From Adineta vaga (Eukaryota > Animalia > Rotifera): a stretch of DNA of 64,000 nt. The stretch covers positions 12,524,001 through 12,588,000 of the forward strand of contig CP075495.1 in NCBI GenBank assembly GCA_021613535.1, read 5' to 3'. Positions 25,291 through 34,857 of this stretch are shown piece after piece (within the stretch, counting starts at the first letter, position 1; every line of letters starts with the position of its first letter). The notes under the pieces are model-generated. The model was not told the origin of the DNA, did no database searches, and was given only the letters and a program-made list of their open reading frames with translations. The position numbers and the translations under genes are program-made.

Positions 25291-26051
25291 ATGCTAGCTC
25301 GTTGTTCAATCGTTACAAAACGTGCATTTTCAAAAGATTTACTTCCATCACGATGGAAAAGATCAGATTCAAATCGATATTGGCGTGCTCAGTAAGATAT
25401 TAGAATAGAGATCATCAACATGTATTTTCTATTTCAATTTATATTTCAGACATAATTTACCAAAAGATGATGATGAACATGGTCCACTAGCTGATCTACC
25501 TGATTATTCTTATTTAAGTAAATATTTAGTTTTTAATCGTTGCAATGAAAGATTTTCATCAAATTTGATCATTCTGATTATTAGATAATGAACCATCACA
25601 TCTATCAACAGTACAACGTAAAAAATATGATTTTAATGCTTCGATTGTTCGACGTGTTCATGAACTTGATGCAGAATTAACTGAAGCAAAACGATTATAT
25701 GCAGAAAAAATAACATCAGCTATGGCAGATTATGATAAAACGGTTCAAATTGCTAAACATATTAAAACATCGAGAAAAGCAAATATTCAAAGAAAAACAG
25801 AACAACATCAAGCACTTCCATCAATTTCTTCATCGAATGAATATTCATTTCAACCGAATTTACTCAATGCTCTTCGTGAAAACACAACATATAATGAAGC
25901 TTATAAAGAAGTCGTCGATCCAGTTGGTGCTATTGTACCAAATAAACTCATGAGTATCGAACGTCCACCTTATAAACATACAGGTGAACGACGTCGTTTT
26001 CATAAAGTATTTACAATTCGTACACCAAGAGTTCGAATGTTTCCGAAATAG
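25291..26051 (+). CDS. MRPL52: Mitochondrial ribosomal protein mL52 with C-terminal extension, 3 exons
   Basis: Exons 25291-25391, 25450-25517 and 25585-26051 give a basic presequence, then YWRAQHNLPKDDDEHGPLADLPDYSYL...IVRRVHELDAEL, matching the WR..GPLTxLPDWSY motif of mL52. Confidence 0.82.
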
Positions 26052-26249
26052 AACAAAAAATAAAAATACAATAGATAAATCACTTTTATTCGTCAGAAAT
26101 TCCACAAACCAGGAAGAAACACACTAGATATGCATTTTCATATTCTATTCATTGTACGATAAAATATCATGATTGAACATTTGATCTATCATTCTTAAAT
26201 TCATCAGTTTTTCAAGTAGAAAATTATAGTTCATTCGTTCTCTTTTATT

Positions 26250-26885
26250 TTATTTCTTTTCCATATTCAGTAAAGCTTTTAATTGTGTACAAAAATGATA
26301 GATTGGAAAACCAACGACATTAAAATAATCACCATCAATCTTTTTTACTAATGTTGCACCTAACGATTGAATACCATAAGCTCCTGCTTTATTCATTGGT
26401 TCACCTGTTTCAATATAGGCTCGAATTGTTTCATCATCAATAGATCCAAATGTGACATTCGTCGTTTCGAAAAATGTTCTCATCATCATATCTCCTCGAC
26501 ACAGACATACACCAGTACATACTTGATGTGTATTATTTGAAAATATTTTAAGCATACGAAAAGCATCATCTTTATCAGATGGTTTTCCGTATACATCATT
26601 ATCTAATGAACACATTGTATCAGCTCCAATAATAATGACATTTTGTTTCTCATTCTCATTCAATTTCAATTCATTATACACATGACGACATTTATGTTCA
26701 GCAGTATCAATGACATATTGAGAGAGATTTTCTTTATATGATAAAAGATCCAGATCTTCAGCAAAATCAGAAACAATGATCTCAAAATTTAAACCAATCG
26801 ATTGAAGTAATTGTTTACGTTGTGGTGAGCCACTTGCTAAGATAATTCGTTTTTGTTGAAGAATATGTTTCAATGGTTGTAACAT
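26250..26885 (-). CDS. Maf-family dTTP/UTP pyrophosphatase (ASMTL N-terminal domain/YhdE-like), intronless CDS
   Basis: IILASGSPQRKQLL, IIGADT, YGKP, HQVCTGV, GEPMNKAGAYGIQ and GDYFNVVGFP motifs. Confidence 0.95.
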   Translation of the reverse strand: MLQPLKHILQQKRIILASGSPQRKQLLQSIGLNFEIIVSDFAEDLDLLSYKENLSQYVIDTAEHKCRHVYNELKLNENEKQNVIIIGADTMCSLDNDVYGKPSDKDDAFRMLKIFSNNTHQVCTGVCLCRGDMMMRTFFETTNVTFGSIDDETIRAYIETGEPMNKAGAYGIQSLGATLVKKIDGDYFNVVGFPIYHFCTQLKALLNMEKK

Positions 26886-26932
26886 CTAGAAGAAAATATA
26901 AAAATCATCTTTCTATTTCGTTTTTTTTCCTT

Positions 26933-27637
26933 TTAAAAAATACAATAGTTTACAAAAATAATACACAAAGGAATTGTTAAATTATCAAGATCGGACGGAC
27001 TTAAAGTTTCGATTACGGCTGCACTAAAACACAAAACGCAAATTTGCATCAGATAAATTGATTGAAAATCGATCAGAATGCAAATATAGAAAGCAGATGC
27101 AATCGTTCCAGCAATAAAAACAGTTAACAAGCCATTCAAGGACTTAGCTCCATAAATTTTCCTTTGATTACCATAACGAACACCAATCACAGCGGCTAAA
27201 CCATCACCCCATGTTAATGTAGCTATAATAACCGAACCTAATACTGTTTTATAGTAAACAGTACCACATAGGATCATAACAAAATTAAAAAAGAGTGGTC
27301 CACGTAAAAGTTCACTTTTTCCACGTTTTCGTGTCATTATATCAATAACAACATTTTGTTTTTGATTTTGACGTGAATGATATTGTCCTATCCATAGAAG
27401 TATACAAGTCCACAGAATATTTGGAAATATATTTAGATATTTTGAAAGATAACCAGAATCATTATAGAAATAAAGAGCGAGATAAAGTGTACCAGCTCCA
27501 ATATGAGCTACTTTTCGTGAAACTTCATTTGTAATTGCATTTTTACTATTCAAATAATATAATAAAAACACAACACTAAATGTAATACCAGTAACAATTA
27601 TGGAAACAGTTGCATTATGAATAAGAGTGAAAATCAT
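26933..27637 (-). CDS. CTP-dependent phytol/farnesol kinase-like membrane protein (VTE5/FOLK type), intronless
   Basis: SRKVAHIGAG, MTRKRGKSELLRGPLFF, WGDGLAAVIGVRYG, KSLNG and DLDNLTIPL parallel the recalled VTE5 motifs SRKLVHI, VTREG..ELLKGPLFY, GDGIADIMG, KSWAG and DDNISVPL. Confidence 0.85.
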   Translation of the reverse strand: MIFTLIHNATVSIIVTGITFSVVFLLYYLNSKNAITNEVSRKVAHIGAGTLYLALYFYNDSGYLSKYLNIFPNILWTCILLWIGQYHSRQNQKQNVVIDIMTRKRGKSELLRGPLFFNFVMILCGTVYYKTVLGSVIIATLTWGDGLAAVIGVRYGNQRKIYGAKSLNGLLTVFIAGTIASAFYICILIDFQSIYLMQICVLCFSAAVIETLSPSDLDNLTIPLCIIFVNYCIF

Positions 27638-27793
27638 GATCTAGAAAATATAAACAATAGATTAGTAAATCTTAAGAAAACGAATTTATTTAATCGAAAG
27701 TTTTTTTTCTCCTTTAAACATATATTTATTATCGGAAATAACTTTTTTTCAAAGGAAAAACAAAAGAACATTAACAAAAAAATAGTAAATATA

Positions 27794-30700
27794 TCATTTA
27801 TTTCTTTTCAGTGTTCGTTGTTTTTCGGCATGTTCAACAATTTTTTCTTCAACACGTAAACCTTTACGTCGACGAACATCATTCATATATTTTTTTGCAC
27901 GATTTTCAAAATCTGCTTTTTCACCAAAATGAAGGAACTCTTCTTCAGTTTGAGGCTCCCAAAATGGATCAAGTTCAATGATTTCCCAATACGTCTTACC
28001 CGATATTTGTGGCGATGCTAGACCACTCGCTTTCTTACGCATTTCTTCAGCAAATCCAAAACTTTCTGCAACTGGCAATTCTGCTTTTATGATAAATGTA
28101 CTTGTACCTTCTTTCATATCTTCGTTTAATACACGTCCATTACGTTTATTTAAAACTGCATATGCACGACCTAGGAAAGCAAAGAAACAGATGCTATCGA
28201 AAACAATAGTTTTCTTTGTATACTAACCTAATGCTTCAGCATTGACCATAGTTTCACATTTAAACATAGCAGCAACAAGTCGTCTTGGTTGAGAATCGAA
28301 TGCTTTTCGACAACCATCACGAACAGTTGATACTATCTGGCCTGACAATGGTCCTTGTGTAAATACAATCTTTGATTTATCAATAACACGACGAGGTTTT
28401 TGTTGACTTTGTAATGTTGATGATTCATCACTCGTCACACTTAGTGTTTCAATTAGACTCTCTATTTCGTCAACTGGATTAGTTACTGCTGTTGTATTTG
28501 TCGCTGAAAGATCAGTATCATTTGTATCTACTGTTTCTGATGATTCTTCCTGATTACTAACAATTGTATTTATTGTCAATCGTTCAATAATAAATCCCAC
28601 ACCCATCAATGGTTCTTCACATAGAGATCCTTTAGCTGTTGCTAATTGAAAACCATTAACAATACTTAAATCATAATCATCTTTCATTAATGAACTATTT
28701 GTAGTTATTTTTTCTTCATTATTTAATACATTTGCCCAAATGGTTGAACCACGATGTCTATAGATACTATTTGGAATACGATTAAATAATAAATTCGGAC
28801 CAGATTTATGTGGACCAAATGACCAAATTTCATCAACTGTATTTTCATTCCACATCTTATCATTTGCAGCAATAAATTCTTCGTTTAATCGTTCTCGTAA
28901 TTGTCGAATTTCATTAAGTGTTTGATCATTTAATTGAACATTTGTTTTTCTATCATCACGTCCTTGTGCTTGTTCAATGACTGCAAGTAACGAAGTATTT
29001 TCATCTAATAGACAAGTAATACCAGCAGGTAAAGGTACTGCTCGAATTTGAACTATACATTGTTGATTTTGTGTACTTAATTCAATTAATCCATCCTCTA
29101 GATAAGCAAAATTATTCTATCTTGATTTTCTTATGTAGAGATTTAGACAAATACCTAATAGCCACGGTGGTCTTTCTTTCGTTGTTTTATTTGATTTCAT
29201 TTGTTGATGTTGATTTGCGAGTGATTCATTCAAAAAATCGACTTTCGGTGGTGGAATAATAGTTTCACGAAATGGAATAATTGGTGCTGAAACATTGATT
29301 TCAATACGAGCATATCTACAGAAAAAAACATATATGTAGGTATTTCTTATCTTTATTCAAATGATTTACAGACATTTTTGTCAGATCATCGATACATCGT
29401 TGTAAATGTACTTCACCGGCTGTTGAAAGAATATATTCACCAGTATCTTTCAATGTACATTCAACTAATGGATCAGCTTGATTTAATAATTTCATACCAT
29501 GTCGAAGTTGTTTCATTTGAGCTAAACAAATAGTAAAGGAAATTATCATGAGTAAAAAGAAAGCTATGAATATTTACAAGGATTTTTTGTTTCAATTGCT
29601 ACACGAACAATTGGTGAAACTTCAAAATGAAGACCAGTAAATGATGGACAAAAGATATCCGTTGATAATGTTGCTGATTTCAATACAAGAGAATCCAATT
29701 GACCAATAGCTAAATTAAATAATTGATTATTTGATGAAGAAAAAGTTATGATCAAACGTACCAACGATATTTCCAGCAGGTACTTGATCAAGTACGGTAA
29801 ATTCACGACCCATCATTAAATAGAGATCTTGTACAATAAATTCATGTACATGATGAGAAATACTACGTACAGAAAGTTCATTGAGATCCTAAATAATAAA
29901 AGTATCAAATATTGTTCGAATTCAAAACAAAAAAATGATTTGATAATTCTTACTTTTCCCGCAAATAATGATGGATCATGACGTGGACTAAGAACGAAAA
30001 TTTTTTGTCCTCTTTTTAATCGTCCACTGAAGACACGTGCAAATGCAAGAAATACATTTTCATACGTATTTTCATTGGAGTCTGTTTTTGCTATTGCACT
30101 TTCAACACTATTCTCTGTTGTAGATTGAACTGTTTCTCCTATTGGATTTCCATATTCTTCATTTGGTGTTGTTGTTTTATTAAGTTGTTTCTGTTTAAGA
30201 AATTCACGTCGTTGAGCTATATCTTCTGCAGTTAATGGTCTATACGAAAACAAACTTAGCGATTGATAGGTTTTCTATTTATCTAACTTTTGTCGGTTTT
30301 GTGATAGAGCACTATTATGCACAGAGAATAATTTGGAAACACAAACGATCACTGGTGCTTGATCATCACTTGAACAATCGATAAATGCTGTGGAAAGTAA
30401 ATTTCCCAAGCTAATAATCAAACTTGATTTAGAAAAAAATCTTACCCTGTTTCAAACGTTGTGTTTCTGGTAATAATGTATCAAATCGACGACTTTTATT
30501 ACACATTAATTGTTCGATTTTATCTGTATTCAATGCTTTTGGATTTGGAAGTTGAGTAACAACCATATCTATATAATTATAAAAAGTACAATCTATGAAA
30601 TTCTTTCGATTCAATGAAAATTTCACTTACCGAAAACAGCTGAAGCTACAGGTAACCATTGATTGAAAAGTAAATGTAATGGAACACATGGATCACTATG

Positions 30701-32149
30701 TCCAATATCTCGTGGAATTAATTTTGCACCAATAGATGCGACAATTTTTTCAAGCTTTTCATTATCACTAAAAATCGAAATTTATTATTCAACTAGAAAA
30801 AGAATTTAAACAAATACAAACCGTCGTGTAATAATAGTTTCATAAACACTCCAAATATTTTCAAGAATAAATTGAACAAACATTGGTTTTTGACCTTTAC
30901 TCTACAAATGAAAAAATAAAGACAATCAATTTATTCAAAATATGCTTTTTCTTCAATTGATTGATTACCTGTGCTCCTTTAAAAACTCGTTTGCTTTTTC
31001 TATCGAAATAAAAATCACCCCATAGAGTTTTCATTAATACTTCGCGTTTAATTGATAATTTTTTTGCATATAAATCTGCGAAATGATGAATTCTATTGAT
31101 ATAAAAAGAATATATTTCAACTGGAAACATGAACTTCAATCATGATTTACCCAAAACCCCATCCATCTAATGCACTAGCAAATAGAACATTATTATAATG
31201 TGGTGAAAAACACATTTGAGCTTCATTTCGCGCCCAATCATCATCACCATCATCAACAATATCATTATTTGTTTCTTTCTTAATCTAAATAAATCATAGA
31301 TAAGTTTCAATTAAACATTAGATTTTGATATCTACTTCTTCATTTGCTTCTTGATCAACCTACAGCAAGCAACAATAGAGTATTTATTCAGAACAAATTC
31401 TTTCTCTTACACTTTTTTCTAATAGTAACGATGTAAATTGTTCAGCAACAACTGCATTTATATTTTCTAATATCCCTCGTATATGTAAATAAGCTTCGAG
31501 TGGTGTCATTTTCAATCCAATGATTAGACGATCAATTTTATTGAGAACTAAAATAATACGTAAATGTTCTAGCCATGCTTGTCGAAGAGCAGCTAACGTC
31601 TAAATTAAAGTTTTATTGTTTTATTAATCCATCATTGAAATGTAATAGTCATTACTTGAGGACAAACGCCTTCAACAACATCAACAAGAATAATTGCACC
31701 ATCACAAAGACGAACAGCAGTAGAAACTTCGGATGAAAAATCAACGTGTCCAGGAGTATCAATCAGATTAATTAAATACTTCTTATCCTCTAAATAAATT
31801 TGATCAACTATTTTCGTTATAAGAATTATCGATTAAATGAGGTAAACCTTTCTCATGTACGAGTGAAACAGCACTGGATTTCATTGTAATACCTCGCACT
31901 TGTTCAGCTTCTAAACTATCCATTAAACGTAACTACAGAAAATGATTTATGATTTCTCGATAATAATTTCTGTATATTTACTTTGCCGGCTAATCGTGTG
32001 GATATAATTCCATTCGAAGCAAGTAAATCATCAGCTAATGTTGTTTTACCATGATCGACATGCGCCAAGATACATATATTACGAATTAATTCAGTATTTT
32101 CTTGTAATTCAGAAAGAACCTCGGATGGATAAGTTATAGTCGGTGGCAT
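27794..32149 (-). CDS. EFL1: Elongation factor-like GTPase 1 (EFL1/Ria1), multi-exon
   Basis: [78 protein letters not shown] and the C-terminal [14 protein letters not shown]. Confidence 0.96.
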
Positions 32150-32443
32150 TGTTGTCTGAATCTAGTTTGCTTTAGTTCTTTCTTTCTAAATAAATGATCG
32201 AGTTTTCAATTTATATAAATCATGACACAATAACTATGACGGATGTTGTAATTACGTAAGATCGAGAAAAAAGACGAATATAGGCATGATTCTATTTACA
32301 CTCTTTCTTCAGAATGAGAGAAAAAAAAAGAAAATAACGCTGACAGGAAAAAGTAAAGCAACAAAAAGAATGTCGAAGACAAAAAAAAGAGAAAACGGGA
32401 AAATAAGACTAATATAATAAGTGATGTCTGATCTTGTATTGAT

Positions 32444-33298
32444 TCATTTTCGATACCATTTCTGTAAGGTATCATAACGTTTTATTTTTCTTTGTAATTG
32501 TAGAACACCATAGAGTAATGCTTCTGCACTTGGTGGACAACCAGGAACATAAATATCTACGGGAATAATACGATCACATCCGCGTACCTAATATGAGAAG
32601 AAAGAAAACGAATATTTTTAAGAATGCTAGTTTGAAATAGATAAGAATTCAATAACATACGACTGCATACGAATAATGATAATAACCACCACCATTAGCA
32701 CATGAACCCATAGATATAACCCATTTTGGATGAGGCATTTGCTCATAAAGTCGTCGAATAGCTATAGAAATATTAGTTGTGAATAAAAAAATTCTTCTTT
32801 TTATGTTGAAAATCTTTGTTTACCTGGTGCCATTTTATTCGTGAGTGTACCAGCAACAATCATAAGATCAGCTTGACGTGGACTAGCACGAAAGACAACA
32901 CCAAATCGATCCATATCATAACTAAAATTAATTAAGAATAATAACTAAAATCAAATGAATAGATATCGAGAAATTTACCGTGGTGCAGCCATGTGCATCA
33001 TTTCTACGGCACAACAAGCAAGACCAAATGTCAATGGCCAAATAGATCCACGTCGAATTAAATTTTGTACATCATCCAAACGAGCTAATGCAACTTCAAC
33101 TTTACTATCACCATAATGTTTGCCTGGTGCATTCTTATAAGGTGATAAATTTGTTACTAAGTTCTGTTCTTGTGCATTTTGAATCGGTGGATTAGTTGTT
33201 TGTTCAACAACAGATGATGCAGTAGCTGCTCCACGATTCGATATAATAGATGGTAGAGTAAGTCGAGAAAATGGCAAAGAATAACGTAAGAGTGCCAT
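32444..33298 (-). CDS. NDUFS7: NADH dehydrogenase Fe-S protein 7 (PSST), 4 exons
   Basis: Presequence followed by [53 protein letters not shown] and WYRK*. Confidence 0.97.
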
Positions 33299-33694
33299 TG
33301 AAAGAAAAAGATCTAAATAAATAATAAAGATTTATATTATGAAAACAATCTCGAATTTTCTATTTTATGAGTTATTCAAGTTCAAAATAGTAATGATCAA
33401 CAAGATTCATTCGCATTCGGTGTCGGTGGCGATATTTTTTTCTTTTCCATAAAATATCATCTGTAACTTTTTATTGGTAAACATATTTTTCGATAGATGT
33501 CATTCGTATTCGACTCTTTGATTTATTTTTCAGACGACGAAGAAGCATATGGCATATTTCATATCAGAGAATGCCAATAAAAAAAACGAAATTCCTTAAA
33601 TAGTTACACGTTCTTTCGACAAGCAATGCTATAATAATGATAATCTTCGTAGAATCATATTCACATATTTAATTCTTGTGAACGAGTAACAACG

Positions 33695-34101
33695 ATGCAT
33701 CTGGTAGTATCACTGAATTTTATTTTCATTGCATCGATTTCGTTGTGTTACAGTGATTCGAATGTGACTGGTGAGAAATGAATCTTAATTTATCATTCAT
33801 AACAGATTACTTTGATCTATTTGTTTTTTTTTCAGAATTATCACCGATTATTTGTAAAAAATGTTCGCCTTGTTGGAATATTTTCAGTGAAAATTTTGGT
33901 CCTTGTACTAATGAAACATTTCAAATAAGCTTCTTTAATAATGTTCAACCAGTTTGTACTGATACATTAGTTTTACTTATTATCATGTTTCTTAGTATTG
34001 TTATTCTTATTCCTACGTGTCTTTGGCTTTGTTATCTCTCGATTAAACGTTGTCGAAATGCCGATGGAAAATATATTGTCAACGAACGCCTTATTATGTA
34101 A
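33695..34101 (+). CDS. Small Cys-rich type I membrane protein of unknown function, 2 exons
   Basis: Exon 1 (33695-33770) encodes the signal-like MHLVVSLNFIFIASISLCYS. Intron gtgag...ttcag (33771-33835). Exon 2 has CKKCSPC...C...C, a TM helix and a short tail. Confidence 0.65.
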
Positions 34102-34857
34102 TCAACACATTTAACAAATTTAGTATTTCGTCATTTTTTTTCCTATTATTTTATTTACTCATGAAAAAAAAAGAAGAGATTGGAATTATGTCGTTTTAAA
34201 AATACGATTGAATAAAACTAAATCTGAGTGATAATTAAATCGTATATGATAGTTCGAATAGATAACTGATTCAAAGCGAAAAAGTTTTGTATCTATACAA
34301 AGATTTGGCTTCAACTGATAATACAGCATATTAACAAAGTCATGTTATTTGTTTTCTTGAAATAATCTATTCTTTATTAAAATGAACATGACGAATGACT
34401 TAATCTGATATGTTGGAATATGTTATAGATTGAATAAAATCAATATAGAATGTTTATTCTATCAAATTAACCAATGATGTCGGCAGTGAAATATACACAA
34501 TTGATGGATGATAGGTGATGCGAGCGACAAAGATTAATTGTACATATCATAATCGTCATTGATCAATCTATGAATAATTTCGTAATATGATAATTATTAC
34601 CGTCAAATTTTGTACGGAATAAGAACGTACTTGAAGAAATTTTTCACAAATCTATTGTCATTTAATTGGTTAAAGAATCATTTCAGTCAATTGTTATTAC
34701 GTATAGTCACGGTTGAATTCATTTCGTTCGGTATTATTCAGACTATTGTTTCATACATAGAATAATAACCTTTTGTCCCTTTCGTTGAGATATTATTTAA
34801 GAGAAAAATTACAAAAAGAAAACGTAACAAAACAATTATAATGATCATTTCTCTTGC

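Follow-up and report, generated by a model that had tools for sequence, protein, structure and literature searches.

Evidence for a probable four-gene operon resolved by spliced-leader trans-splicing in Adineta vaga, a bdelloid rotifer

In a 64,000-nt stretch of the genome of the bdelloid rotifer Adineta vaga (hereafter the window; C2:12,524,001-12,588,000 of a 100.8-Mb assembly in six contigs or chromosomes, with about 30% GC here and introns of 50-70 nt), four genes lie head to tail on the minus strand in the order NDUFS7, EFL1, a phytol-kinase-like gene, and Maf. We propose that these four genes probably constitute one operon of the tunicate type, resolved by spliced-leader (SL) trans-splicing. 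SL trans-splicing occurred at all three downstream genes in one RNA run, the ends of upstream messenger RNAs (mRNAs), where seen, abutted the acceptors, and the arrangement was conserved among bdelloids; on these points the operon reading put forward in an initial annotation held up, and its remaining element, polycistronic transcription from one promoter, is one that we infer. The co-orientation, starts, and spacing of the genes were re-derived and proved correct in that annotation, with ATG codons at 33298 (NDUFS7), 32149 (EFL1), 27637 (kinase), and 26885 (Maf), and stop-to-ATG distances of 294 nt (gap 1), 156 nt (gap 2), and 47 nt (gap 3). The four gene identities that it had assigned likewise hold, on the basis of domain matches, orthologues, and named homologues. 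In window coordinates, the genes are as follows.

32444 to 33298, minus strand: NDUFS7, the complex I PSST subunit, in four exons, identified by exon-wise tblastn to PF01058 orthologues.
27794 to 32149, minus strand: EFL1, a ribosome-maturation GTPase, multi-exon, identified by Pfam on exons.
26933 to 27637, minus strand: phytol/dolichol-kinase-like membrane protein, intronless, 234 aa, identified by homologue names.
26250 to 26885, minus strand: Maf/ASMTL-type dTTP/UTP pyrophosphatase, intronless, 211 aa, animal-type, identified by PF02545 and TIGR00172.

The sequence of the 23-nt rotifer SL exon is published (PMC3795323, Table 1), and Pouchkina-Stantcheva and Tunnacliffe (2005), as relayed in PMC1925144 and PMC3795323, described the same 23-nt SL as the 5' leader on many bdelloid mRNAs. 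We found 59 near-matches to this exon in the genome, compared with 0 for the reversed control, and in the loci read a GTAAAT donor came after it, which is what SL RNA genes should have. RNA contigs from four runs of four studies were then aligned to 26700-32690; these runs carry no RNA label on record and were treated as RNA, and they behave as RNA because introns are skipped in them. In run X16, an identical 9-nt loose end was observed at 32187, 27642 (two contigs), and 26887. Once the AG that contig and genome have in common is counted in, this end equals the final 11 nt of the SL, attached at 32186, 27641, and 26886, exactly where SL addition at the downstream genes had been predicted. The 11-mer occurs 0 times within the window, and three in-register SL ends at the predicted AG dinucleotides are not a matter of chance. 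The AG acceptors listed in the initial annotation are all present, at 33313 (14 nt before the ATG), 32186 and 32162 (36 and 12 nt), 27641 (3 nt), and 26886 (0 nt); however, an AG before an ATG says little by itself, because over half of bdelloid mRNAs carry the SL (PMC1925144). For EFL1, where two acceptors had been suggested, the SL end demonstrated use of 32186, and 32162 was dropped on the RNA contig evidence. A kinase contig of run X6 also ends at 27642, with 5 extra letters that are unlisted. A long loose end at 26825 turned out to be a chance 19-nt match to a C1 gene, and the other long loose ends were treated as noise in the same way. The junctions and associated elements are listed below.

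33313 to 33314, minus strand: putative SL acceptor of NDUFS7, a YTAG that precedes the ATG by 6-14 nt in each of the species compared.
32286 to 32318, minus strand: conserved block in the NDUFS7 3' untranslated region (UTR), containing TGTAAATA at 32300-32293, Pumilio- or CFIm-like.
32179 to 32187, minus strand: junction 1, at which the EFL1 SL acceptor (AG 32187-32186) is apparently also the NDUFS7 poly(A) site, from an SL end in X16 and a poly(A) end in X6.
27641 to 27730, minus strand: junction 2, with AATAAA at 27730 and 27690, EFL1 RNA to 27662, a spacer of ~20 nt, and the kinase acceptor at 27642-27641.
26886 to 26932, minus strand: junction 3, a gap of 47 nt closed by the Maf SL acceptor, which immediately precedes the ATG, with an X16 SL end at 26887.
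33299 to 33694, no strand assigned: head gap common to NDUFS7 and the divergent gene, candidate promoter, with motifs at ~33501 (GACATCT), 33461, and 33408.

The upstream mRNA stops ~0 nt from the next acceptor at junction 1 and ~20 nt from it at junction 2, and the distance is no more than 35 nt at junction 3. At junction 1, an X6 contig of NDUFS7 terminates at 32179 in a run of 11 A; as the genomic sequence is itself A-rich at this point, reading AAAGAAAG, the cut was placed at 32186-32179. From the NDUFS7 stop to the EFL1 acceptor (last 200 nt), AATAAA is absent in every species compared. A second, solo copy of NDUFS7 on C5, the only second copy of any member of the unit in this genome, has AATAAA ~70 nt after its stop, and its next gene is ~1.4 kb away; chromosomes 2 and 5 of A. 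vaga are homoeologous (PMC8494291). Across six bdelloids, gap 1 measures 284-314 nt and retains a conserved TTTAG acceptor and an A-rich leader. The 3' UTR block is near-invariant in these six bdelloids, and its core is kept in the solo C5 NDUFS7. The TGTAAATA block also resembles the SL 5' splice site, and in the six species it sits 108-126 nt upstream of the EFL1 acceptor. Rfam over 25500-34500 at E<=5 gave no match, and a structured RNA in the block is not claimed, as the consensus fold was weak and the covariation term unfavorable. Finally, a 3,924-nt contig of run X2 includes spliced NDUFS7, gap 1, and spliced EFL1 in one, which indicates RNA reaching beyond the NDUFS7 poly(A) site; the contig shows overlapping RNA, not a single molecule.

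At junction 2, the longest EFL1 contig (X6) ends at 27662, which is 23 nt past an AATAAA at 27690-27685 and 20 nt before the kinase acceptor; no poly(A) is listed at this RNA end. The AATAAA at 27730-27725 cited in the initial annotation is present, and the one at 27690-27685 had been overlooked. The layout of poly(A) signal, short spacer, and acceptor proposed there therefore describes junction 2 and fails to describe the other two, since a canonical AATAAA is found at one of the three junctions. At junction 3, three runs have kinase contigs that stop at 26921, and those of one run reach ~26911, which leaves 25-35 nt to the Maf acceptor. In six of six bdelloids, gap 3 is 35-49 nt long and ends in TAG-ATG, while the kinase itself is only 62-69% identical.

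The gene order was kept in A. ricciae, A. steineri, Rotaria sordida, R. sp. Silwood1, and a metagenomic bdelloid (2.8-Mb contig), with the same divergent and convergent neighbors in most of them; thus, the arrangement spans two bdelloid families. In three Adineta species gap 2 spans 99-156 nt; overall it ranges from 99 to 1,516 nt, and junction 2 is therefore the least constrained. In R. sordida, whose gap 2 is long, an acceptor-like site is left at the Adineta position, and the long Rotaria gap contains no convincing open reading frame (ORF). In Didymodactylos carnosus (L025:7981-11200), Maf follows NDUFS7 1.8 kb on, with neither EFL1 nor the kinase between them, and no kinase was found in the homologue search; this arrangement is either an older state or a loss. 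The Maf gene of Brachionus has different neighbors. The public A. steineri annotation fuses EFL1 and the kinase (L062:4134-9951), and the public Rotaria sp. Silwood2 protein P0038 fuses the kinase and Maf. Fused gene models are the usual mis-annotation at operons.

Spliced genes were compared exon by exon in all homology searches. NDUFS7 was identified through syntenic PF01058-bearing orthologues (A. ricciae exons 78-88% identical), and its final intron was spliced in four RNA runs. EFL1 exons match GTP_EFTU, EFL1, and EFG_C in Pfam, and 14 EFL1 introns are listed as RNA joints. Maf matched PF02545 with an E value of 1.5e-59, and its best named non-bdelloid matches are animals; the exact Maf protein has no record in the contig index searched. 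EFL1, the kinase, and Maf are each single copy in the genome.

The kinase appears to have a different origin from its neighbors, which are spliced host genes. Its best non-bdelloid matches are Chlorobi, Ignavibacteria, and KSB1 proteins (35-39% identity, 145 bits), compared with 89 bits for Euglena, the best named eukaryote, and 82 bits (E 4.7e-18) for plant VTE5; homology to a Ca. Thermochlorobacter protein is full-length, at 36% over 228 aa. The homologue search gave no named non-bdelloid animal match, and no Pfam or NCBIfam family matched. In a maximum-likelihood tree from a quick search, in which most rows bear no species name, the bdelloid kinases formed a clade with support of 100 and grouped with Chlorobi, Ignavibacteria, and KSB1 at a Shimodaira-Hasegawa-like approximate likelihood ratio test (SH-aLRT) value of 85. 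Judged from sequence comparison, the gene is a probable horizontal transfer from bacteria that is now expressed via the host SL. It falls in the VTE5/FOLK/DGK-type family, and cytidine triphosphate-dependent isoprenoid alcohol kinase activity is predicted. A solo kinase copy in A. steineri has a TAG just before its ATG too.

In the mechanism that we envisage, one RNA polymerase II unit would start in the head gap and run through all four genes. The spliceosome joins the 23-nt SL exon to the AG before EFL1, the kinase, and Maf, thereby supplying each downstream mRNA with a cap. The NDUFS7 mRNA ends at the next acceptor itself (one run), that of EFL1 probably ~20 nt short of it, and that of the kinase somewhere in the final 35 nt. 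The upstream mRNA contains the branch point and pyrimidine tract of the acceptor at junction 1, and probably also at junction 3. One precursor would then yield the upstream or the downstream mRNA, probably not both, as proposed for Ciona, and weak poly(A) signals would permit read-through. Extra weak internal promoters may act alongside that of the head gap. As a candidate promoter, which we infer from sequence, the head gap has motifs that align in 5-6 bdelloids; GACATCT also precedes SL RNA genes and the C5 copy of NDUFS7, and a motif scan, weak and partly circular, found no head-gap motif in the three intergenic gaps.

Several observations weigh against a single four-gene operon. All listed SL ends come from the single run X16, and more than 50% of bdelloid mRNAs are trans-spliced, single genes included (PMC1925144). 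The NDUFS7 poly(A) end was found in one run within an A-rich stretch, where internal priming is possible; such priming would nevertheless need RNA continuing beyond the EFL1 acceptor. The RNA evidence consists of assembled contigs, in which neither a junction-spanning single molecule nor a start site is visible. For GACATCT, 0.75 matches are expected by chance, and the motif test is weak and partly circular. Moreover, gap 2 is long elsewhere, at 1,516 and 1,229 nt in two Rotaria and 219 nt in the metagenomic bdelloid, and solo kinase copies exist in A. steineri (L021:10001-10705) and a metagenomic bdelloid contig (L065:10001-10711), so the kinase does not depend on this operon position.

These last two points would fit two two-gene operons, NDUFS7-EFL1 and kinase-Maf, or a hybrid in which the kinase has an extra promoter near the end of EFL1. 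Only at junction 2 is there a canonical AATAAA, only there does the length vary, non-coding blocks common to both Rotaria are kept inside their long EFL1-kinase gap (L023:8485-10000; L064:8772-10000), and the solo copies fit the same picture. However, the EFL1 RNA of A. vaga stops only ~20 nt short of the kinase acceptor, gap 2 remains within 99-156 nt in three Adineta species, and it holds no head-gap motif, and we consider such a split or hybrid unit unlikely. That the four genes are independent, with promoters buried in the 3' parts of the upstream genes and the SL replacing a short outron, is in our judgment quite improbable. The high frequency of trans-splicing in bdelloids (PMC1925144), the convergent gaps nearby, which are also tiny, and the conserved non-coding blocks of gap 1, which could be promoter elements, agree with independence; yet in six species a Maf promoter would have to sit inside a fast-evolving, probably foreign ORF, the families share the gene order and similar gap lengths, and in one run the NDUFS7 3' end coincides with the EFL1 acceptor, a hallmark of Ciona operons.

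The initial annotation had itself raised cis-splicing of the acceptors as a competing outcome, for which the public models fusing kinase with Maf (P0038) and EFL1 with kinase, together with the donor-like GTAAAT that in all species precedes the EFL1 acceptor by 108-126 nt, might be adduced. It is largely ruled out here by SL ends at three sites and by contigs of three runs that are unspliced across 27135-26921, over the donor of a proposed 68-nt intron fusing the kinase to Maf. The GT of that donor is absent in five other species and no such joint is among the joints listed, and this fusion was rejected. The exact agreement of the loose ends with the SL at each of the three sites also speaks against assembly artefacts, and we regard cis-splicing or artefact as highly implausible.

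A single operon with SL-resolved junctions is thus the reading that we prefer, and the locus likely represents a kind of operon already known, in a new phylum. In operons of Ciona intestinalis, the upstream poly(A) site lies directly at the downstream acceptor, without AATAAA in 16 of 18 cases (PMC1488885; Satou et al. 2006). Junction 1 appears to share this arrangement, with co-oriented unrelated genes and apparently the general SL on the downstream gene. However, Ciona operons mostly have two genes whereas the rotifer unit has four with mixed junction types, and unresolved precursors were cloned in Ciona (PMC1488885) whereas the rotifer unit is known from contigs only. The nematode analogy of the initial annotation did not survive, because NDUFS7 and EFL1 apparently have no intercistronic DNA, and have no canonical AATAAA, between them; junction 1 therefore resembles Ciona (PMC1488885) and the rare SL1-type operons, not SL2 operons. 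Caenorhabditis SL2 operons do resemble the unit in downstream SL trans-splicing and in functionally unrelated housekeeping genes, but they have an intercistronic region of ~100 nt and a dedicated SL2. The rotifer unit has 0-35 nt (~0, ~20, and <=35 nt), short of the ~100-nt SL2-type spacing, and its visible 11 nt equal the common SL; the rare SL1-type Caenorhabditis operons are closer. Oikopleura dioica, according to PMC1488885 and PMC7986045, has a single SL and intercistronic stretches of 23-30 nt, comparable to the ~20 nt of junction 2; its upstream cistrons lack AATAAA, whereas junction 2 has two. The chaetognath Paraspadella gotoi, gnathiferan kin of rotifers, has operons recognized by gaps below 250 bp plus an SL, with no operon-specific SL (PMC12460157); its SL sequences differ from the rotifer SL. 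That article (2025) names rotifers among lineages with trans-splicing or operons, and a term search of it returned no rotifer operon data. In the literature on rotifers and bdelloids we found no description of rotifer operons, most subscription papers lying outside the search, so that absence is unproven; Simion et al. (2021) mention neither operons nor trans-splicing.

Other features of the SL genes and the neighborhood were observed. SL copies occur on C1, C2, C4, C5, and C6 (L009-L018), many as head-to-head pairs ~131 nt apart. Every genomic copy begins with T where the published SL has G, which is perhaps cap-derived. Eight copies carry C>A at exon position 10; the visible 11 nt on the downstream genes match the main SL, and this position falls outside them. 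The SL RNA introns show two variants (C1 versus C2 loci), and these exon and intron variants could reflect a possible hidden SL specialization. Upstream of the unit, a divergent gene (33695-34101, plus strand, ATG 33695; 112-115 aa in relatives) of unassigned family and without a Pfam match is kept at the head in five other bdelloids. Downstream, the last exon of a convergent MRPL52-like gene (25722-26051) ends 198 nt from the Maf stop, in a conserved position; one convergent gap in A. ricciae is likewise tiny (39 nt).

The locus offers an SL at every downstream gene, is conserved in two families, and includes a gene of probably foreign origin, and it is a compact, conserved test locus with three junction types. 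If it is confirmed, rotifers would join the animal groups with demonstrated operons. The unit accounts for gene models that are fused in public annotations of bdelloids, and it bears on a single versus multiple origin of SL trans-splicing and operons in Gnathifera, as chaetognaths have both. A study of expressed sequence tags reportedly found no SL in the monogonont Brachionus. The unit also bears on the way in which foreign genes come to be expressed in bdelloids, the animals in which horizontal transfer is most extensive. We tentatively suggest, as a possibility that we rate rather doubtful, that bdelloids have a genome-wide operon system whose operons serve as landing pads for foreign genes. 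If this is true, an intronless bacterial gene placed between host cistrons would need an AG acceptor only and no promoter, which would help explain the domestication of many horizontal transfers by bdelloids.

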